Assembly (NCBI RefSeq): GCF_000143415.4
Contig: NW_003314264.1
Span: forward strand, 538,774-602,773
Origin: Selaginella moellendorffii
Lineage: Eukaryota; Plantae; Lycopodiophyta
Direction: 5' to 3'
DNA: 64,000 nt
Part shown: in pieces, positions 25,260 to 59,516 of the stretch
How positions within the stretch are numbered: the first letter of the stretch is position 1
Layout of the letters: every line of letters starts with the position of its first letter
Notes under the pieces: model-generated
Seen by the model: only the letters and a program-made list of their open reading frames with translations
Told to the model about the DNA's origin: nothing
Databases searched by the model: none
Program-made: the position numbers and the translations under genes

Positions 25260-26934
25260 TCAGCTCCTTTGTAAGCAGTATAAGTCTGCTACCCACGGTG
25301 CGAGCACAACGTTGTCTGGATCCCTCTTGTTCAAGCGATAGTAGTCCGACCAGTAGCAAGGCATGGGTCTCGGAAGAAGAGTACCTTCGCTGTCACATAT
25401 GCACAGTGGCAGCCAGCATTCACCACCATAAACTCGCCTTCGACGTTCCCTGGGATAAGCCAATGGTGCCTGTAGATACCTGTAGAGGACGATCAAACAA
25501 TTTTATGTCATCTCTCCTTTTCTTATAATCTTTTCTCTAGTATCTGTCTCCCTGCATCGTGCAAGCATGCAGTGTTAGTGTAAGAAAATTTCTTCCAGGA
25601 GGAAAAAGAGAAGGGGGGAAAGAAAAACGACACGCTTAACGTATCAGTGCAATGCAAGCAATGCCATGCAAAATGAAGGCCAAAATTTATCACCTGATTC
25701 CATGCACGGTAGCGTCCCAGCTGAAATGCGTGTGCCCAAACACATGGAGAGCTCCGGAATTTCCACTGGAACCATGGATGCTCCTCAGTCTGCGTTCCAG
25801 GAAATCTGATCCTATCACCTTTGGAAGATTTGGATAGAAAAGCATTCTTTTCTCTGGGCAAAGCTCTGGTCTGTTTCACAACAAACAACACTAAGAACGT
25901 CACACAACACAACCCCATTTTCTCGCACCTGGGAAGGAAGTGAGAAAAGGTGATGACTCGCTCAGTGCTGTGCCGAATCTCCGTAAGACACTGCTGGTTG
26001 CAAGAGTTAAGATCATCGAAGTATGCAGCAAGTGCTATATCAGGAGTCTTGAGCTCGTCCGGCCACTTACAGGCATGATAATCAGTGCAGCGCTGCACCG
26101 CATATGCAAACAGTGTTGTCAGAAAACATGTTCAAAGTGAAGAAGCAGAGAAGCAAAGAAAATCTTGAAACCAATGAAAGAGAAGATAACATGCCTTTTC
26201 GGGAGGTGGAATGTTGTAGCCGACTATGTCCCGTTCCTTATCAAATGTCTGCAGGGGGAAGAATTCTCGAATGTCAATCCAAAACACGTCTGCTAAACTA
26301 CGAAGGAGATTGCCTGGTGATACCAGGAAAGTAGAGGAACGATCCAAACTCCGCAAACTTTCCCTGGCTTGGTGTCGATGCAAAGAGACTCGCATATCGC
26401 ATTGAGCTCCCTCAACTTTCCCAGCGAGTCCAGCTGCAAAGCCAGAAAAGAATTAGTTTCTTTCTCCCACGAAAAAAAAGGAGGACGAAGTGTAATTACG
26501 TGCTTGTTCTCCTTGCCTCTACACCACAAATCGTGGTTCCCAGGAACAAAGAAGACGCGATGAAACCTTTCCTTCAACAGCCTCATAGTGTCTTTGAAAG
26601 TCTCCAAGTTGTCTGAGACGTCGCCCGCCACGATCAAAGTATCTCGTTGATGCAACTTGGTCGACAGCTGCACGATCCACTGCAAATTCTCTCGATAATC
26701 GGTGTGCAAATCGGACACAGCATAAACGCTCGCATGAGAAGAAATGCGGCGCCTCTTGCTGCCGATGCTGCCATAACCGATGCCTTCCCAGCTAGAAATT
26801 TCCAAAATCCAATCACTAGAAAATCTCCCCTCCGCCCACACATACCTCGATCGGCGCCAGAGCAATCGTTGATTGCTCGAGGAAGGAGACGCCGGCGCCT
26901 CGATCGCGGAGATCCCACAGCGCGGCGCAACCAT
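25260..26934 (-). CDS. Calcineurin-like metallophosphoesterase (multi-exon, apparently intact)
   Basis: VSDLHTDY, IVAGDVS, VPGNHDLW, PLLSWYH, TFSHFLPR, HVFGHTH, RYLQAPLAYPRER; stop at 25260. Confidence 0.9.
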
Positions 26935-27184
26935 GGCCGCTGCGCAAAGAGAAGAATAAAGAAACCCTACATTCTTTGAGAGTTTAAGCGCGGTAAATTT
27001 CGCTGGTGTAAAAATGATTAAGTTAGTAGGGATTAATTAGCACACTAATTTGTTATTAGTGGTCCATGCATTATGAATTGGAATTTATAATGTAGCTTTG
27101 TATGCTCCGCTGGGGGACTCTTGGAGCAAGGACGTGGAGGGAGGAGCGGTTTAGGGTTTTGGGTTTGCGAGGTCGGATCTAGCC

Positions 27185-29491
27185 ATGGAATGTGGATCGT
27201 CGCTCGCGGGATCGCTCTCGGCTGCGCTGTGCCTGCCACACAGATTCCGCGCCCGGGGAGGATGCGCCAGGAATGTGTCCGTGAGAGCGGCAAATTCCGG
27301 CTCTCGGGGGGGCGTGACTTGCAGCTATGACCAGGAGAAGATTTTGGTGGCCAACAGGGGCGAGATCGCGGTGCGTGTGATCCGGACGGCGCACGAGATG
27401 GGAATTCCCTGCGTTGCCGTCCACTCCACCGTCGACAGGGACTCGCTGCATGTCGAGCTCGCGGACGAGGCCGTGTGTATCGGCGAGCCAGCCAGTGCCA
27501 AATCGTAAGTCACATTTTCCTTTCTCCGCGAAGCTTTCCTTCCCAAAATCTCTTTTTTCCTTCTTTCTTTCAACTTTTCCTCCAAAGTCCACAGCTAACT
27601 TTTGACATGCAGCTACCTGAACATTCCAAATCTGCTGTCCGCCGCCATGACCCGCAATTGTACCATGCTCCATCCCGGATACGGGTTCTTGTCCGAGAAT
27701 GCGAAGTTCGTGGATATGTGCAAAGATCACGGCTTGAACTTCATCGGCCCAAACGTAAGCATTTGCTTTAGCGATGGATGAAAGGTCGCAAGTTGATTTT
27801 CATCCCTTTCTTTCTTGTGCTTTGCAGTCTGATAGCATTCGAACCATGGGAGACAAGGCTACTGCTCGAGACACGATGAAAAAGGCCGGGGTTCCCACTG
27901 TTCCTGGAAGTGATGGCCTGGTCGAGGTAAATTTTTTGTTTCTATGTTTGGTTTCTTTCTCAGCTTTGTCGCTGTTGTTTTCCAGACTACCGAAGAAGCC
28001 ATTCGTCTCGCTCACGAGATTGGTTTCCCAGTCATGATCAAGGTTGAATGTCTTGTCCTTTTGTTTTTTCATTTTTCTGATCTCTTGGAGTTATCATAGG
28101 CTACGGCTGGCGGTGGTGGTCGTGGTATGCGACTAGCAAATGAACCCGAAGAGTTTGTCAAGCTTTTGCAGGTTCGTGGAAATCAATCTAGTGTTAGATC
28201 TAATTTTTTATTTTCTTTCATTTTCTTAGCAAGCTCGCAGCGAAGCGGGAGCTGCATTTGGCAACGATGGAGTGTACCTGGAGAGGTACATCAAGAATCC
28301 CCGGCACATCGAATTCCAGGTCCTCGCGGACAAGCATGGAAATTGTATACACCTTGGGGAAAGGGATTGCAGCATTCAGGTAGAATTACTCTTTTTTTTT
28401 TCTTTTGTTTCCAGTTTTGAGGATTGTTATTACAGAGGAGAAACCAAAAGCTTTTGGAGGAGGCACCATCGCCGGCTCTAACACCAGAGCTGCGCAAAGC
28501 CATGGGAGATGCGGCGGTGGCTGCTGCTGCATCCATTGGTTACGTTGGGGTTGGAACCATTGAGTTTTTGCTGGACGAGAGTGGAGCCTTCTACTTCATG
28601 GAGATGAACACACGTATCCAGGTGAGGCAACTCTCTAGCTCTTCACCTTTCTAATGTCTTTTGCTTCTTCACAGGTCGAACACCCTGTCACGGAGCTCAT
28701 CTCCTCTACTGATCTCATAGAGGAGCAAATTCGAGTTGCTTTGGGAGAAAAACTTCGATACAAACAGGTGACGCGTTCTTACGTTCATCCATGAAATTCT
28801 CATTTCATAAATGTTTATTCTTGATGTTTAGGAAGATATTGTCTTGAAGGGCCACTCCATCGAATGCCGAATCAATGCAGAGGATGCCTTTCAAAACTTC
28901 CGGCCTGGACCAGGTAAGACATTGAAACTTCATAACGCTTGTCCTAAGACTAACCATCCATCCACAGGCCGTATAACAGGCTACGTTCCTCCAGGAGGCC
29001 CCTTCGTGAGAATGGATAGCCACCTCTATCCAGACTATGTTGTTCCTCCCACCTATGATTCTCTCCTCGGAAAGGTTTGCTATGCTTTCTCCTAAGCCTC
29101 GGTTAAAACTTTTCTTTATAGCTGATCGTCTGGGCACCAACACGGGAGAGAGCTATTGCTCGCATGCAGCGAGCGTTGCAAGACACCATAATCACAGGTA
29201 CTTTTATCCCTTCTCAAATCGATTTGTTTCTATTAAGAGTGTGGCTTTGCTCAGGGGTCCCGACTACAATTGACTATCACAAGCTTATCCTGGAGATTCA
29301 GGTGACTATCTTCTTTCTTGCCTTCCCTTTTCTCATGATCTCTTTCACTCTGGTTACATAGGACTTTAAGGACGGAAAGGTTGACACAGCTTTCATTCCC
29401 AAGCACGAGGAGGATCTCGTTGCTGTACGTATGCAATAATCGTCACTGTGATTACTAAACTACATTGTTTTGGTGTTTTTCGCAGCCATGA
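27185..29491 (+). CDS. CAC2: Plastid acetyl-CoA carboxylase biotin carboxylase subunit
   Basis: Transit peptide; [74 protein letters not shown]; final coding exon is only CCA TGA (29486-29491). Confidence 0.96.
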
Positions 29492-29692
29492 TCCTCTTCA
29501 ATGTTTTGTAGTCGCAGTTTCTCGAAAATTATTGACACTTAAATATTCATAAATCATTTGTTTCTGCGATAGTAAACTTCAAAATTTCCATGAGTTAACT
29601 CAAAAAGAGTTTGTCCCAAGCTTTAGCATCTCGTCCGCAAGTACTCTAGCTCTAAGTTGGAAAAAGAAATTATGTACACTATCCCCAGTCTC

Positions 29693-30591
29693 TCATTGCC
29701 GGACGTTCCTCACACGCTGTTCGTAGAAATCCAGAAGCTGCAAATTCATGTGTAAGTTCGCTACCATAAAACACGAAAGGAGAAAAAAAAAGAATGAAAA
29801 CTACCAGCTGGGGATAATTTTCGCGCAGGTACTTGTTATCCAGTAGAATCTCCTCGCCATCGGACCTACAGAGCGAAACAAAGCGAACAAGCTCAAGAGA
29901 AAAGCCTAGAAACAAAGGCCAGTCTTACCGTAGAACCTTGAAGGTCACATTGAGATCCTTCTCCCCGTTGCTGAGTTCTCTCGTGGAGTAGCTCATTGCC
30001 TTGAGAATTTTCTCCACCGCGACGTGATTCGCAACAGTGGACTGCAAACTCGGGCTTCCAAGGTCCTGGTGTGGCTTTGCAGCTAGCAATGGAGGCAGGG
30101 CCTTCTCGCCTTCCACTTCAGCTTTCACCTCAGCGTTCACTTCAGCTGCTACCAAAGCTTGCTGACTACAAGAAAGAAAAGAAGCGATTGTTTCATTTGT
30201 CATGAGAGGAAATGACGCTCTTACCTCCGCTCGAAGTCCTTGAGGGCCTGGGGGCAATTCGCTAGGTGCTTGTGCGGCTCCCAAGTATTGAACTCCTCTG
30301 GATATCCCTTCCTGCAGCGAAAGAAAGCCTTTAAGAAAAAAAACATAGAGCGAAGAACACGAAGCACACCATTTTATGTAGTAATGGAGTTTTCCCTGCA
30401 AAGAAAACAGAAGCAAGCATCTTGAGCGAAAGAAGAACCAAAGGAACAGCTCGAACCTCGAAAAGCCTCATCTGCTGGATGGATTCCACCTCATAAAACT
30501 CGTCATCGTCGTTGCGGGATCGCTTGGCGCGCTGCTTGTCCCACTGCTGCGAGCTGTAAAACGACACACTCTTTCTCTTTCTCTTCTCCAT
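29693..30591 (-). CDS. Chromodomain + chromoshadow-domain protein, LHP1/HP1-like, ~196 aa, 6 exons
   Basis: Spliced EFYEVESIQQMRLFEGKLHYYIKWKGYPEEFNTWEP (chromodomain with aromatic cage) and VTFKVLRSDGEEILLDNKYLRENYPQLLLDFYEQR (chromoshadow). Confidence 0.88.
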
Positions 30592-30745
30592 GGTCTAGTA
30601 GCACAGCGCTGCAAAAGGCAACCCAGCAGAGGCTAAAAACACACTCCAAAGCGATGAAAATAAGACTAGCAAGAAAAACGCGACGAAAAGATCGAATAAA
30701 AGAGAGTGAAACGAAGAAGAAAGAAAGAGGGGGAATCACTGGACT

Positions 30746-31036
30746 TTAGTTCAAAGAGAGCGCCGAGAGATTTTCCCCCAGCGAGCACTCGACATGGCAA
30801 GAAACGCGGCAATGCGTGGGGATGAGAACTAATCCCAGGCTCCGAGACTCCGTGCCCGCGCCCTGCCGCTGCTCCAGCGTGTCGTAGAGGATGATATTCC
30901 CTTGCTTGTCCAGGCAGTGGAACTTACCCACGAAAATCCGCCCGTCCGCAACGCCGATGCGCATGCTCCTGTACAGCAGCTTGCGGCACTGCTTCACGCT
31001 CGCCCTCTCCTCCACCTCCACTCCTCCTCCTTCCAT
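30746..31036 (-). CDS. LSm-domain NatC auxiliary subunit (NAA38/MAK31/LSMD1-like), 96 aa, intronless
   Basis: RKLLYRSMRIGVADGRIFVGKFHCLDKQGNIILYD..RSLGLVLIP Sm fold; telo-box just upstream. Confidence 0.85.
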   Translation of the reverse strand: MEGGGVEVEERASVKQCRKLLYRSMRIGVADGRIFVGKFHCLDKQGNIILYDTLEQRQGAGTESRSLGLVLIPTHCRVSCHVECSLGENLSALSLN

Positions 31037-31039
31037 CCA

Positions 31040-31060
31040 AATCCCTAAACCCTAAAACCT
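31040..31060 (-). promoter_or_regulatory. Telo-box (AAACCCTA) upstream of the NAA38-like gene; similar boxes at ~20139, ~26962, ~27151, ~36228, ~43264
   Basis: AATCCCTAAACCCTAAAACC directly 5' of the ATG. Confidence 0.55.
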
Positions 31061-31327
31061 CTCTTCTTTATTGCGCAGCACTCTTGTGTTCTTCCGGGAA
31101 ACGTGGAGAGCAAAAGAATAAAACCGCTCGACTTGGTTGTGGTCGCTAAAAAGAGAACTAATGTACAATTTTTTACTTTCTCACCACCATTTTTTTTTCT
31201 TCGGTAGCTCCTGCGAGATTCAATCCAAAAAGACGAGAAAGAAAACAGAGAAAAGAAATAAAGAAAGAGAGAAAAAGAAGAAAGAAAGAAAAATAAAAAA
31301 CCGAACGAAAAATGGGTACCGTGGTAG

Positions 31328-34300
31328 CTAGCAGTTCAATCCACACTGTTGCAAGTGAGGCCCCTGGGTCTTCGGCAAGAATGGATCGATCCTCACCCAA
31401 AGCAGCGAGAAGATCGAAGCCAGCAGGATCGACCAGACGATGACGATGGTTGGCGTCCTGTTTTGCCGTCCCATGAGCCCCTTGAGGAACGGATACAAGT
31501 GGACGATCACCCAGAACGCGAAGAACAGCTTCCCGAACAGCGGCCCCCACGACTGGTACCCGCTGTTGATGGCGTCCGCCAAACCGGCCACCACTCCCAC
31601 CAGGTTGATGATGAGCAGCGTCGTCGGGGGGACGAGCAGCGTCGTCCACTTGAGCGTGTAGAGCTCGCCAAACTCCTCGTCGTCCGTGGCCTTGGACGTC
31701 ACCGTGAAGTTGGTGTCGATACCGGCGAGGACTTTGAGCAGGCCCTGGAACACCGCGAAGAGGTGGGACGAGACGCCGCCGATGACCCAGAACTGCTCGT
31801 TCCTCCACCACTCCTCGATGCCGACGTTGCTCCACCGCATCTCCAGAATGGCCGTGGCGAAGATGGACACGAACATGGAGATGAACCACAAGCTGGCGAA
31901 GTTGCTTATCTGGACGTGTCAAAAAGGAGACGATGTGAGCTTCAAGAAACTTGTAACAAAGCTTCGTACGTACCTCTGGGATGATGAACTTGCCGGTGAG
32001 CAAACAGACTGCTGGAAGCGTGCAGTAGGCCACGAGAGGAATGGACGTGAGAGGATAGACCGTCGTGTTGATGTACGCAAATCTCTCGAGCCATTTCAGC
32101 CGGCCACCGTAGCCATACCACAGGGGACAATGCCTGCTCAGGAAGATCTCAACGGACCCCAAAGCCCACCGGAGCACCTGGTTGAGACGATCGGACAAGT
32201 TGATAGGTGCGGATCCCTTGAATGCAGCTCGTTGAGGCATGCAGTAGATTGATCTCCAACCACGAGCGTGCATCTTGAAACCAGTCAAGATATCTTCCGT
32301 GACTGAGCCGTAAATCCATCCAATCTGAAACAGTTACATAAATGTGTGAGGAATGTCTCTGAACTTGCATTGCGTTACCTCTTTTCCCCACTCGGTTTTG
32401 TCTTCGTAACCACAACTAATCACGTGAATGGCTTCTTTCAAAAGGGAGGCGGGGCTCGCGGACTGAGGAACACCTCCGTGCTCCAAAAGTGTTGATGCGA
32501 TAAAAACAGGAGATTGACCAAACCGCTTTTCAAAATTCTTTTGAGACATTAGCGTCGATTTCTCTTCATCAAATCCTGAAATGAAAAAAAGAGTTATGAA
32601 AAAAGAAAAACACCTGAGTAAACTGTTTACCTTCAAATCCTTCTTCTATGTCATCGAGGTTGAAGATTGGGACGGACGAATCACTCCTGGTAGACATCAT
32701 TCTCTTCTCCATCTTCTTCACTTTTTGCTTCTTGGTCTTCTTCCGCTTCCCACAACAAAATCCGGGACAGCAATCACAAGTACTGGCCGCTTCCTTCTCT
32801 TTCTCTCCAGCAGGTGCCTCGTAACCATAAAGCGATTGTCTTCGGAAGACGCAACCTGTACCCACGTATACGGGGCCCTGAATGCCATCGAGACCTTTCA
32901 TGTTAATCTGAAAAATCACAGAGTCAGCAACTGTAAACACCTAACGTTTAGTAGTCTTACGTCAAAGAAGACGGTGTTGCGGTTAGCGTATCGATCGTGA
33001 CGATCAATACCATCAAACCTCTGAGGAAACTGCACGTAGCAAACCTTCCTCCCTAATGTTGGATCCATCATAAAGCACATAGCCTCTCTCACAGCCTTGC
33101 TGTTGTTTATGTAGTGATCGCAATCCAAGTTAAGAAAATATGGAGCATTCGTTAGCACCGCAGACACTCGCACCTAGAGAAGTTGATTGTCAACAAAAAC
33201 ATAAAAGATCAGAGTATAGAGACCGTACCAAGGCATTCATAGCACCGGCCTTCTTGTGATGGTTAAACCCAGGGCGCTTCTCACGAGAAACATACACCAG
33301 GCGAGGTAACTCATTTCCTTCCGTGTCATGACCACCACTATGACCCAAGAACACCTGCAAACACTCATTCTTTATCGGTCCTGACAGAAATGAAGGAATA
33401 CGTACCTGAATCATGCCCGGATGATCGCGCGTATTGTTTCCAGGCCACGGAGTCCCATCTTGCATCGTCCATCCCTCCTCTGGAACTTTTTGCGCCTTTG
33501 CAACCAGAGCATTGATGCGAACTTTAAACTCCTCGTACTCCCTCTGCATGTTCACTGTTAGGAAATAGAAACACGAAATGCATATACATACCTTCATGGC
33601 GCGTCTTTCTTTTACAAAACTCGGTTGGACTTTATCCTTCAAATAGTCAATCTTTTGCGCAAAGTACCATTCGGGTGCCCGAGGCTCAATGTTGAACTTC
33701 TTGCAAAACGGCACCCATTTGCGAGCAAACTCGGAAGTTTCAGAGAGCGCCTCGAATGTCAACATTGCAGCACCATCGTCTGAAACGTAGCAAGAAACTT
33801 TGTCGACGGGATAATCAACTGACAAGATCGAAAGAACGGTGTTCGCCGTGACTAACGGCGGCTCTTTCATCGGATCCACAGTACTAACGTAGACATCGAC
33901 AGAAGCGAGTTGCGATGGCTCCCCATCTTTCTCATATCTGAAACGCACGCCATTAAAATCAACATCAATGGCAATGTATATACTACCGCGCCTACCTCAA
34001 AGAAAGTCTGTCCAGGTACGTCTCTCGTTCGATTGGAAGCCATTTTGGAAACTGATCAAGAATCCAAGACAACGCGAACCAGATCTCGCAAATGATCGAC
34101 GTCAACCACAAGGGGTATGCATCTCGCACGGGATTCATAATTCTATAACGGAAGAAGAATCCCAGGATCACCAGACGAATGACTATAATCATTCTGTAAG
34201 GATTGATCCTACTCGAGGGGATTGGAACCTTTCTTGAAAGAGGCTGTCTCGCCTCGTCCATTCTACAGAAACATAAAACCATTAGCAAGATGAGGCAAAA

Positions 34301-35562: not shown

Positions 35563-37222
35563 TGGCCGCCAAAAACCCCCCCGGATCGAAATATCACCCG
35601 ATCACTCCTCCCCCGCGATGGATTCGCGGCGGCGCTGCCGTGGCGACGATGAATCGGGGCCGAAATCCCGCTCCTGCTGCTGGCGCCGTGCAAATGCGGC
35701 CCCGCATTCACGCGAGACAAAAGCTCCCAGCGGCGATCTTCACAATGCCGCGCCTCCAACCTCGCGAGATCGCTGTGCCTGGGCCGCGCGGTCACGCTGC
35801 ATGCCCTCGCCCTCGCGAGCCACCACAAAAAACGCTAAAACGCGCACACTCTCACTACCAGGCACACGAGAGCTCCCCATCATTCGCCATGCCCAAAAAA
35901 ATGAAGGTCTCCGCCGCCAGAATATCCCCCACGCCGCCGGAATATCCTTCCCCCGCGCACGTGCCTGGCTGCCCGCGGGCAGCGGGCCGGACAGCTAGCT
36001 CGGAAGCGGAATAGGTGGCCTCCGTAACCCGAGCCCGCCAAAGGCCAGGTGGCGGGCAGATTCCCCAGAGTAGGTGGCGGGAATATGCCCCGCCGTGTGG
36101 CGGCCACTACTAACGTATGACATGATGTCCTGGAAAAGTTTGCGATACAAGGCAATCTGACGCTCATGACACGTGGAAAATCACTATTACGATTATGATC
36201 GCACCCGGGTCAAAGCTAAATCTTGCTTTAGGGTTTACGCGGGTTCGCGCCAGCCTGGCATGCCCTAGCGCCGTCAGCTAACGGCGGGCAGCGTGGGCCT
36301 GCCCGGGGTTTACCCCCAACCCCACTGTTTGTGTGGAAAAAAAGGGTGGTGCACAAGGCTTATATGTTGGTTTGTGACAGCCAGCTTGTCCTCCTCTTTC
36401 TTTTTTGCTTTCAATTATCAACTTCATTGCTGTCCCTGCTGTGTTGCATGCCCCATTGTTTTTTTTTTCCTCTCTTTGCTTTGCCTGTGCGACTAGTGGT
36501 GCCCGTCTACATCTTTGCTTGTCCCTCTCACACAGCCCCTTTCTTTGCTTCGCTTTCTTTGCTTGTGTTCGTCTTTGGCTGCCAATAAAAACACCCCATT
36601 GACAAGCGCGCAAGTCCATAAACTTGGAGCTTTGTCTGTTTTGTTGTTGAGCTCTCTTTCCACGCTCGAGAACGATTTACGTTAATGTACCATTTAAAGT
36701 GTCGTGGCGCGGTGTCCCCACCCATATGGCATTTTGGCAGCCCGGCCAGGAGTCAGTTGCAACGAGAAAGCATCGCTTGACTTCGCCTGGGATACAACGC
36801 GCGTCACATCAAAACAGAGGTTACTCTTACCCCTCCAGGAGGATCAAAGCCGATCCGGGAAAACAAAAACTGTCTGTGCTGGTGTACTACTGTAGTGTAG
36901 TGTAGTCGTGTCGCTCCTACGTTTCGGTGGCAGACGGTCCGGCTGGAAAATGAAAAGGAGAAAAATCAGAAAGTGAATATCGAGTGAACTCCTTTACCAG
37001 TAGGATCAGATGCAGTAAGAGGGGGAGGATGTCGGTGTGGTTTTTGTGGGAAATCTTCCCACTTTGCGGCTTTTAAGACCTTCCTGCCAATCTCCCAGGC
37101 GCTTTTCATTTGCTTTTCCCCCCTGACGTTGACATGAAATGTCTCCTATTGGGACGCGTCCTATGCTTGAATCTCACTCCACCTAAATGTCCCGTCCTTA
37201 AAAACTGGACTAAGTTAGTCCA

Positions 37223-57100: not shown

Positions 57101-59516
57101 AAAAATTTTCAGTGACAAAAATTTGAAGTAAACTAGAGAGGGAACTATACTCATGGTAAAAACTTGAAAGTCCATAGAGAGCAATCGAGTAGTAAATCAA
57201 AGCCACTTCCAACACTGCCCACAAAAACATTTGAAACCAATCACTAGCAAACCAAGTTACCTTCCACATGTGCTACCAAGAAACATGCCAAATAACAAAG
57301 CACTAAAGCAGGGCGCTAAAACAAGGAAGCATCTCTTAAACCCTATGACCTAATGAATCCCTATGTCATGGGGTCAAACTTGATGATATGTGGCATCTAT
57401 ATATAAAACATTGTTCATATTATGGGGACATCATCAACCCATCGGGCCAGCATCCATGGGGTATCCATGAGGGATCCAAATGACATTTAATGCCAAACCA
57501 ATAGAAAAACTACCACATGGACAATGTATTGTGAGTGAAATCTACCACAGTAACACTCACCCTTTTACAAATTGCATGCCATAGCTTGTTTAAGTAGCTT
57601 CTATGTATAGGTATGCTCATCCCTCTAGATGTTGTGAATAAAGGGTATTCCTGCCACCAAAGTAGAGAATGTGGCAGCCACCAATGCCATCCTATCTTAC
57701 CACTCTTAGAGTCAAGCCAAGTGGCTTCAGTCACATTATTTCAATTTAAGTTTTTTATTTTTTTTGCTATTTTGTAAGAGCTGCTCTCTTTCTTTAGAGT
57801 GTTAGATGGAGACTCTTCACATGGTATTAGAGGCATAGTGCTTTAGACATTAGTGTCATCTCTATCCTCTTGGAGAAATGGAGCAATGAATTTTCTTGTT
57901 GCAGAATTCTGGTTTGTGAGGTGGGGATTTTGGCTTGTGGTGTTTGATAAAAGTTGATAAAGGTTTGTGGGTTTATTTTTTATTGCTTGGCTTGTTGCCA
58001 CACATTGCCATTTACAGTTGCATTGTGTGGCAAAATCATCTATACTAACAACAAAATCAGTTTTCATTTTCTATAGCAACAATTATACAATGCATATATG
58101 TGGTGAGTGTAAGCAATTTTGAGTTTGAGTGTAAGCAATCTTGAGTTTGAGCTTTTATTACTACAAGTGGTTTTTAGGATTGCATATTTGAGACTTTTCC
58201 TTTTTGTTTCATACTTTTTAATTTTTTTTTCCTTCCCTTTATTTTTATTTTATTTCTTTTTACATTTACTTCCATCACTTTGGTGTTCCCATCAATTTTT
58301 TTGTTCAATATTTCTATTTTGCTCCTTTATTTCTCAATCCCTCCAACAATCTTTATATTATAGCGATTGACTAGCTCAAGAAAGAGTATTCTAATGGAGA
58401 AGGGAGAAAAAGACAAGCTCGAGGATTCAAGCTTAGGAAAGTAAACTTGAGAGGTTCAAGGTTAGGACTGTATTCCTAACCTTGACGTGAGCAGTAGCGA
58501 CTATAAAAGTAGGACTTAGAATGTTTTTAGACTTATCCCTAATACAAAATACATTGCAATACATCATCATTCTGCCTATCTCTTTGGCTTTTCACAGCAA
58601 TGTCTTACTTACCCACCGCCTTTAAGGGATCAAAGGCGTGGGACTAACACCTTCAAGCACATGTTCACAGTCTCTACTTGGCTTGGCTCAAGCAGGTAAG
58701 TGCATTCATTTTGTAGTGTAGTTTTAGATTTAGGGACTAGATTAGATTTGAATCTCCTAGGAAGATCTCGTGTGGACGTTTTCCTCCCAGTCCAGAGAGT
58801 CCAGGAGTTTTCACTGGCGACCACGGTGGGATAGAGCAGATCAAGACGATCATTTTCCCCAAAACTTCAAGGAAAACGGACCAAAGACGCTCAAGAAAAT
58901 GGCATAGGAAGAAAAAGCCCCAAAAATCAAGAAAAACAAGACCGTAAAACAAAAACGGTGGAAGAGCATGAAGGAATGAAGAAAAAAATGGAGCGTAAGA
59001 CCAAAAGATGAAGAACACTTGAAGATTGAAGCCACCCAAGTCGTGGAAAACTTGGAGCGTACGCGTAACTGTTTTTGGCGAGAGGTTGAAGAAAGCGAAT
59101 ATTCCAAGAATCTGCGAGAAGGAAACGACCAAGGGAAAATTCTAGCGGCTGGAGATGGAGGAAGAATGAAAAAGCACTACTGCCCATTTGGAGACACAAG
59201 CTGTACAAGATACGAAGACTGCCTTTTGTGTGGTTTCAGAAATTGTGCAAAACCGTACAAGCAATGCTATCCAAAATGACGATGTGACACTTGCAAGCAA
59301 GCAAAAGCTAGACTTCGAATCAAGGATGAAAATGCCATAGCGGAGGAGAGAAGAAAACGAGAAGAAATAGCCCAAGAAAATGACACTAAAAAGAGAGACG
59401 ATAGTTTAGAACAAGCAGCGAAACAAAGCTTTAGTTGCTTACAAAAACTTCAAGAAACGATTCTGCGACTCTTCTACAAATTGTCTAGCAGATAGGAAGG
59501 ATGCAAAAATGAGGAA

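Follow-up and report, generated by a model that had tools for sequence, protein, structure and literature searches.

The locus described here raises the question of whether two conserved open reading frames (ORFs), which lie head-to-tail on the minus strand of the Selaginella moellendorffii genome 154 nucleotides (nt) apart, are expressed from one shared messenger RNA or from two transcription units. It occupies positions 29693 to 31060 of a 64,000-nt stretch of DNA (the window), which corresponds to scaffold GL377568.1 of assembly GCA_000143415.2. The upstream ORF encodes an NAA38-like protein of 96 amino acids (aa), whose exact sequence is recorded for that scaffold, and the downstream gene encodes an HP1/LHP1-like chromodomain protein. 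The original prediction held that the spacer between them is one intron, that its removal yields a dicistronic mRNA, and that polycistronic expression may be a general feature of this genome. We conclude instead that these are most likely two ordinary conserved nuclear genes in an exceptionally gene-dense Selaginella stretch. In the reading that we favor, to which we assign a probability of about 0.5, their transcription units abut or overlap, the HP1-like gene starts within a pyrimidine tract in the spacer, and RNA that reads through both genes is a likely by-product.

Several features of the DNA argue for two units. RefSeq annotates the NAA38-like and HP1-like genes as two separate genes on both haplotypes of the assembly, neighboring genes are also closely packed, the spacer appears to evolve neutrally, the pairing is absent elsewhere among the genomes compared, and no credible intron could be recognized in the spacer. 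Additionally, the scarcity of AUG codons ahead of the HP1-like start is not significant, and an AAUAAA-like hexamer overlaps the upstream ORF's stop codon.

The upstream gene comprises the following elements.

31040..31056, minus strand: tandem telo-box GGTTTTAGGGTTTAGGG, 4-19 nt upstream of the LSm ATG, a promoter or 5' untranslated region (5'UTR) element of the NAA38-like gene
30746..31036, minus strand: NAA38/LSMD1-like LSm-fold ORF, intronless, 96 aa, 291 nt, assigned from PF01423, PDB matches and the RefSeq name of its allele

The ORF begins with an ATG at 31036 in the context TTTGGATGG, a weak Kozak sequence with T at -3 and G at +4, and ends with TAA at 30748-30746. Its product passes the Pfam threshold for PF01423 (26.8 bits against a cut-off of 23.4), and its best PDB matches are NAA38 chains (7mx2_C at 3.6e-8, 7l1k_C at 1.3e-7, and 6yga_C), with SmB behind them at 1e-5. 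The second allele, 98% identical in its product, is located on GL377614.1, which represents the second haplotype of the assembly (haplotype B), and is named "N-alpha-acetyltransferase 38, NatC auxiliary subunit-like" in RefSeq. These results support an NAA38-like protein that is nearer to NAA38 than to spliceosomal Sm/LSm proteins, and it is likely to be the small subunit of the NatC N-terminal acetyltransferase, as predicted from its sequence. In common with NAA38/LSMD1 (Mak31), the NatC auxiliary subunit, it has the LSm fold, with human, fission-yeast and budding-yeast NAA38 as its best matches, and the core motif conserved in land plants and charophytes is present in the Selaginella ORF. 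The plant homologues compared are 114-166 aa long; at 96 aa the Selaginella protein is the shortest among them and has neither their N-terminal extension nor their mid-loop insertion. Since the ORF aligns up to its last residues with 15 plant and charophyte homologues, the stop codon is genuine. NAA38 is intronless in Physcomitrium as well, and a word search found only one NAA38 gene in S. moellendorffii. The two haplotypes differ at only two positions of the ORF, 30847 and 30762, both of which change the amino acid (S/P and A/G), with zero synonymous differences, although these numbers are small.

Read on the plus strand, the telo-box shows AAACCCTA at 31047-31054. The window as a whole has a five-fold excess of telo-boxes (8 against 1.6 expected), and none of 100 shuffles reached 8. 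Three of them lie 11-33 nt upstream of annotated ATGs, namely those of the LSm, biotin carboxylase and metallophosphatase genes.

The downstream gene has six exons.

30457..30591, minus strand: HP1-like exon 1, 45 codons, start context GACCATGG, a perfect Kozak sequence
30370..30395, minus strand: HP1-like exon 2, 26 nt, chromodomain, model matches XP_024521250.1
30225..30311, minus strand: HP1-like exon 3, chromodomain, PF00385 match on this exon alone
29929..30165, minus strand: HP1-like exon 4, hinge plus the beginning of the chromo-shadow domain, model matches XP_024521250.1
29805..29865, minus strand: HP1-like exon 5, chromo-shadow domain, from the domain match and the model
29693..29737, minus strand: HP1-like exon 6, TGA stop, model matches XP_024521250.1

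A six-exon model built by hand, from the ATG at 30591 in ACCATGG to the TGA at 29695-29693, translates residue for residue to XP_024521250.1, a protein of 196 aa with a chromodomain (PF00385, 56.6 bits, residues 33-82) and a chromo-shadow domain (PF01393, 33.3 bits against a cut-off of 22.4, residues 163-192). RefSeq names it LHP1-like. The protein aligns with the chromodomains of CBX5 and Arabidopsis LHP1, and it carries Y, W and Y opposite the positions of the methyl-lysine aromatic cage of CBX5, which we take to be Y20, W41 and F44. The domain matches and the alignment thus support a short HP1/LHP1-like protein, predicted to be a reader of methylated histone H3. Like HP1 and plant LHP1 (TFL2), it combines a chromodomain at the N-terminus, in which the aromatic cage positions are present, with a chromo-shadow domain at the C-terminus. 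With its 196 aa and short hinge it has the size of an animal HP1, unlike Arabidopsis LHP1, which is about 445 aa long. On haplotype B two RefSeq accessions, XP_024542344.1 and XP_024542346.1, carry an identical LHP1-like protein, implying that there are transcript variants distinguished by sequence outside the coding region.

The original prediction was thus right about both identities (LSM and Chromo/Chromo_shadow domains, the NAA38 PDB matches and the RefSeq names) and about all of its coordinates on the minus strand: the telo-box at 31056-31040, the ORF at 31036-30746, the spacer of 154 nt and the HP1-like stop at 29693. Its sequence elements are likewise present, with a GT at 30739, 6 nt past the stop, AGs ending at 30609 and 30595, and ACCATGG with its ATG at 30591. 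What these elements mean depends on the spacer, in which the following features are relevant to splicing.

30592..30745, minus strand: inter-ORF spacer, 154 nt (135 nt in haplotype B), T/C-rich and A-poor, with no ATG, telo-box or stable fold
30738..30739, minus strand: proposed donor GT, CCA/GTGATT, score -3.5, below 30 of 30 real donors, 6 nt past the stop
30609..30616, minus strand: acceptor-like TTTTGCAG, 17 nt before the HP1 ATG, score 3.7 (83rd percentile), identical in both haplotypes

The spacer is indeed pyrimidine-rich and unusual, as had been noted: it consists of 46% T, 26% C, 18% G and 10% A, and it is one of three such T-rich, A-poor 150-nt blocks on both strands of the 64 kb. 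The other two are located at 36357-36580 on the plus strand and at 58854-59051 on the minus strand. Its composition resembles that of the five introns of the HP1-like gene (46% T against 37-50%). Intron-like composition by itself is a poor guide here, since T/C-rich tracts occur in introns, after stops and before starts. We scored the splice sites themselves, using donor and acceptor matrices derived from 30 local introns (13 from biotin carboxylase, 12 from cellulose synthase (CesA) and 5 from the HP1-like gene). The underlying gene models reproduce 499 of 499 aa for biotin carboxylase, the exact HP1-like protein, and 1113 of 1114 aa for CesA, where one boundary may be 3 nt off; metallophosphatase was excluded because its model did not reproduce the annotated length. 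Real donors were scored leave-one-out, and the chance level was taken from dinucleotide-preserving shuffles of the spacer.

The proposed spliced dicistronic mRNA would lose an intron from the GT at 30739 to the AG at 30609 or 30595, which would leave 23 or 9 nt between the ORFs. The dinucleotides are where this reading places them, the T-rich, A-poor composition (T 46%, A 10%) suits an intron, the acceptor at 30609 is strong, and intergenic splicing is known at 158 read-through loci of Arabidopsis (Kurihara et al. 2022, PMC9768141). The 30 real local donors, however, score from -0.9 to 4.8, whereas the donor at 30739 scores -3.5, the alternative GT at 30744 scores -2.9, and every other GT in the spacer scores lower; the best donor in the spacer is worse than in 98.6% of shuffles. 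Moreover, haplotype B lacks a 10-nt stretch that includes the GT at 30739, and it retains only AAA/GTCCCC (-3.0). On the acceptor side, TAG/A at 30595 is poor (-2.3), and an acceptor as good as TTTTGCAG, with its 3.7, arises in 24% of spacer shuffles. The intron would also be 131-145 nt long, against 47-82 nt for 27 of the 30 local introns. In the equally T/C-rich tract 3' of the CesA stop, credible splice sites are present, namely a donor ACG/GTACCC 9 nt past the stop (score 1.2) and an acceptor CTCGCAG/G (score 1.9), which speaks for such introns at this locus and indicates that the method can recognize one where it is plausible. The splice sites of the spacer are no better than chance, the claim that the spacer is one intron is not supported, and on these scores we regard that specific intron as highly improbable, and a spliced dicistronic mRNA as extremely unlikely. 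A related possibility is that one promoter serves both genes through alternative splicing, so that the NAA38 ORF is either kept or is interrupted by splicing from a donor upstream of it or inside it to the acceptor at 30609, which would yield an HP1-like mRNA that lacks all or part of the NAA38 ORF. That acceptor is strong and the same in both haplotypes, donors at 31058 (GAG/GTTTTA, -0.4), 31015 (0.8) and 30927 (TGG/GTAAGT, 0.9) score within the range of real donors and are shared by haplotype B, and the two LHP1 accessions of haplotype B imply variants outside the coding sequence. Yet these donors lie at the weak end of that range (7th-17th percentile), the GGTAAGT at 30927 is accounted for by conserved G-K-F codons, and the introns would be 318-449 nt long and GC-rich, unlike local introns. 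We consider this arrangement quite unlikely.

Two further elements of the spacer bear on the transcript ends.

30745..30750, minus strand: ACTAAA, a possible polyadenylation (poly(A)) signal that overlaps the LSm stop codon, one mismatch to AAUAAA
30698..30733, minus strand: pyrimidine tract of 36 nt interrupted by a single G and a single A, candidate core promoter (Y-patch type) or 5'UTR tract of the HP1-like gene

We infer the transcript starts and ends of the two units as follows. The NAA38-like gene would be transcribed from the telo-box promoter, and its transcript would end shortly past the stop, where ACTAAA is the sole AAUAAA-like hexamer between the LSm ORF and HP1 exon 2, or slightly within the HP1-like gene, at its 5' end. 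The HP1-like gene would start from a TATA-less core promoter within the pyrimidine tract, the Y-patch being a type of plant core promoter element, and would have a short, AUG-free 5'UTR. With units that adjoin or overlap in this way, a certain amount of read-through RNA containing both ORFs is to be expected; it would probably be a by-product, sensitive to nonsense-mediated decay (NMD), with its second ORF poorly translated as in Arabidopsis.

Comparison of the haplotypes is consistent with a spacer of ordinary intergenic DNA. Per 100 nt it shows 3.9 events of divergence, compared with 3.5-3.8 in the flanking intergenic DNA and 0.5 in the HP1 exons, and haplotype B has two deletions in it, of 10 nt and 9 nt. 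The spacer thus appears to evolve as neutral intergenic DNA, free of constraint, and we rejected haplotype conservation as a sign of function because it diverges as fast as intergenic DNA does. No haplotype difference falls in the last 65 nt ahead of the HP1 ATG, but this is not significant (about 0.09, a Poisson estimate). The spacer gave no Rfam match at E <= 1, and its predicted fold is no better than that of shuffles (z = +0.63); a reading of it as an internal ribosome entry site or as a non-coding RNA was rejected on these two results.

A number of observations weigh against two separate units. The boundary between the genes, at 135-154 nt, is the tightest of the locus, and this length, together with an ORF1 of 291 nt, is within the range of green-algal bicistronic loci. 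No AA dinucleotide occurs over 161 nt at the spacer, and no A-rich sequence such as follows the CesA and HP1 stops is found. The 150 nt upstream of the HP1 ATG contain 9% A, against 15-30% for four other local ATGs, and no telo-box is present in the spacer upstream of this ATG, unlike the three neighboring ATGs that have one. Finally, the weak Kozak context of ORF1, with T at -3, contrasts with the perfect ACCATGG of ORF2. Even so, a spacer of 135-154 nt can still hold a start site.

These observations suit a true unspliced bicistronic mRNA, which would start at the telo-box, carry the NAA38 ORF, the spacer and the spliced HP1 ORF, and acquire its poly(A) tail past the HP1 stop. The HP1-like protein would then be made from ACCATGG by leaky scanning past the weak AUG of ORF1, or by reinitiation after a 14-codon out-of-frame ORF that ends at 30753-30751. 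The spacer of 154 or 135 nt compares with median inter-ORF distances of 183-260 nt at Chlamydomonas bicistronic loci, and the 291 nt of ORF1 equal the figure for Auxenochlorella, the published ORF1 medians being 291-600 nt (Gallaher et al. 2021, PMC7896298; a 2025 leaky-scanning study, PMC11892635). A spacer with no A-rich sequence of the poly(A) type and no telo-box fits this reading, its lack of structure suits scanning, and donor-like sites poorer than those of 98.6% of shuffles are expected for sequence that is kept in the mature RNA. The start contexts, TTTGGATGG for ORF1 and GACCATGG for ORF2, also fit, as does the rarity of other starts: besides that of ORF1, only two further ATGs precede ORF2 in the 445 nt between the two starts, and the spacer contains 0 against 1.2 expected. 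The depletion is not significant, however (3 ATGs against 5.2 expected, P = 0.13), and at both internal AUGs position -3 is a G. Physcomitrium, Marchantia and Diphasiastrum lack the pairing, and the spacer tolerates insertions and deletions freely. The stop of ORF1 would lie upstream of five exon junctions, a geometry that makes an NMD target in Arabidopsis (PMC9768141) and that would be awkward for the sole NAA38 gene found in the genome. On balance we hold a bicistronic mRNA of this kind to be possible but doubtful, and we still prefer the interpretation in which two transcription units abut or overlap.

The comparison across plants covered a moss, a liverwort and a lycophyte. In Physcomitrium, Marchantia paleacea and the clubmoss Diphasiastrum, NAA38 has no chromodomain gene within 10 kb, and among the genomes compared only the two S. 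moellendorffii haplotypes have the NAA38-HP1 pairing in common. On a Logan contig of another plant, NAA38 is adjoined by a lipoxygenase. Logan contigs of Physcomitrium patens, 2.7-2.9 kb long, carry the NAA38 ORF near their 5' end as the sole sizeable ORF; the remaining stretch of about 1.9 kb beyond it lacks any sizeable ORF and represents genomic DNA or else an unusually long 3'UTR. For both haplotypes, exact look-ups of the two proteins (96 aa and 196 aa) returned the NCBI genome assembly only, and the 90% clusters of both proteins hold just the two alleles each. Word searches for fragments, including carriers of HP1 exon 1, gave no candidate, and an exact 29-nt anchor at the HP1 start had no match in metagenome contigs. 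A search of one literature library found no link between NAA38/LSMD1 and bicistronic expression, nor between Selaginella and nuclear polycistronic mRNAs.

The surrounding genes show how little space complete gene boundaries occupy here. In minus-strand order, CesA is followed by the 96-aa LSM gene and the 196-aa Chromo/Chromo_shadow gene, and then by a convergent biotin carboxylase and a divergent metallophosphatase, so that five genes, the pair included, lie within about 10 kb. The CesA stop is at 31328, which leaves 291 nt of intergenic DNA to the LSm ATG. The T/C-rich tract just 3' of that stop (31211-31319, minus strand) is a candidate 109-nt 3'UTR intron, whose donor and acceptor are both retained in the other haplotype; if its roughly 109 nt are subtracted, about 182 nt are left for a 3'UTR, the telo-box promoter and a 5'UTR. 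The stops of the convergent HP1-like and biotin carboxylase genes are 201 nt apart (29492-29692), and therefore their 3'UTRs are either very short or overlap in antisense. Biotin carboxylase and metallophosphatase diverge, with about 250 nt separating their ATGs (26934-27185) and a telo-box about 30 nt upstream of each, which makes this a compact bidirectional telo-box promoter. Such boundaries are almost as tight as that between the NAA38-like and HP1-like genes.

As it stands, then, the locus mainly illustrates the tight packing of Selaginella genes, and it adds no independent support to the generalization that polycistronic expression is a genome-wide feature. Each of the readings considered is of a known kind, be it tight tandem genes, read-through RNA, or a bicistronic mRNA of the algal or CDC26-TTM3 type, and the genes were already annotated. 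Read-through in Arabidopsis is a close comparison for the interpretation that we prefer. There, too, the genes are co-oriented land-plant neighbors, and read-through is likely here given the tight spacing. At most of the Arabidopsis read-through loci, monocistronic mRNAs and separate start sites exist as well, the read-through RNAs are minor and NMD-targeted, and the second ORF is rarely translated (PMC9768141). It follows that RNAs of this kind, if made here, would not couple the two proteins. The Arabidopsis mechanism, in which an intron spanning the boundary removes the poly(A) site of the first gene, is the one that had been proposed for the present locus (PMC9768141); unlike the Arabidopsis loci, the end of the NAA38-like gene offers no credible donor.

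The bicistronic loci of green algae, together with the CDC26-TTM3 bicistronic transcript of land plants that is cited in the algal papers (PMC7896298; PMC11892635), resemble the present pair in their short ORF1 (291 nt), their inter-ORF distance, their weak ORF1 start, strong ORF2 start and AUG-free spacer, and in that the ORFs encode unrelated conserved proteins in different frames. The NAA38-HP1 pair differs from them in that its AUG depletion is not significant and that five introns, downstream of the ORF1 stop, interrupt its second ORF. Deep conservation is seen for CDC26-TTM3 and for many of the algal pairs, but not, in the other plants compared, for the NAA38-HP1 pairing. It is conceivable, though we give it a minority of our confidence, that both proteins are made from one unspliced mRNA driven by the telo-box, the HP1-like protein by leaky scanning, and that the locus belongs to a lineage-specific set of Selaginella bicistronic genes. 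A shared mRNA would couple the dosage of a chromatin reader with that of a subunit involved in protein acetylation and would add a vascular-plant case to a phenomenon that is firm only in green algae and for CDC26-TTM3; a whole set of such genes would mean that polycistronic expression of the algal type is recurrent in a vascular plant.

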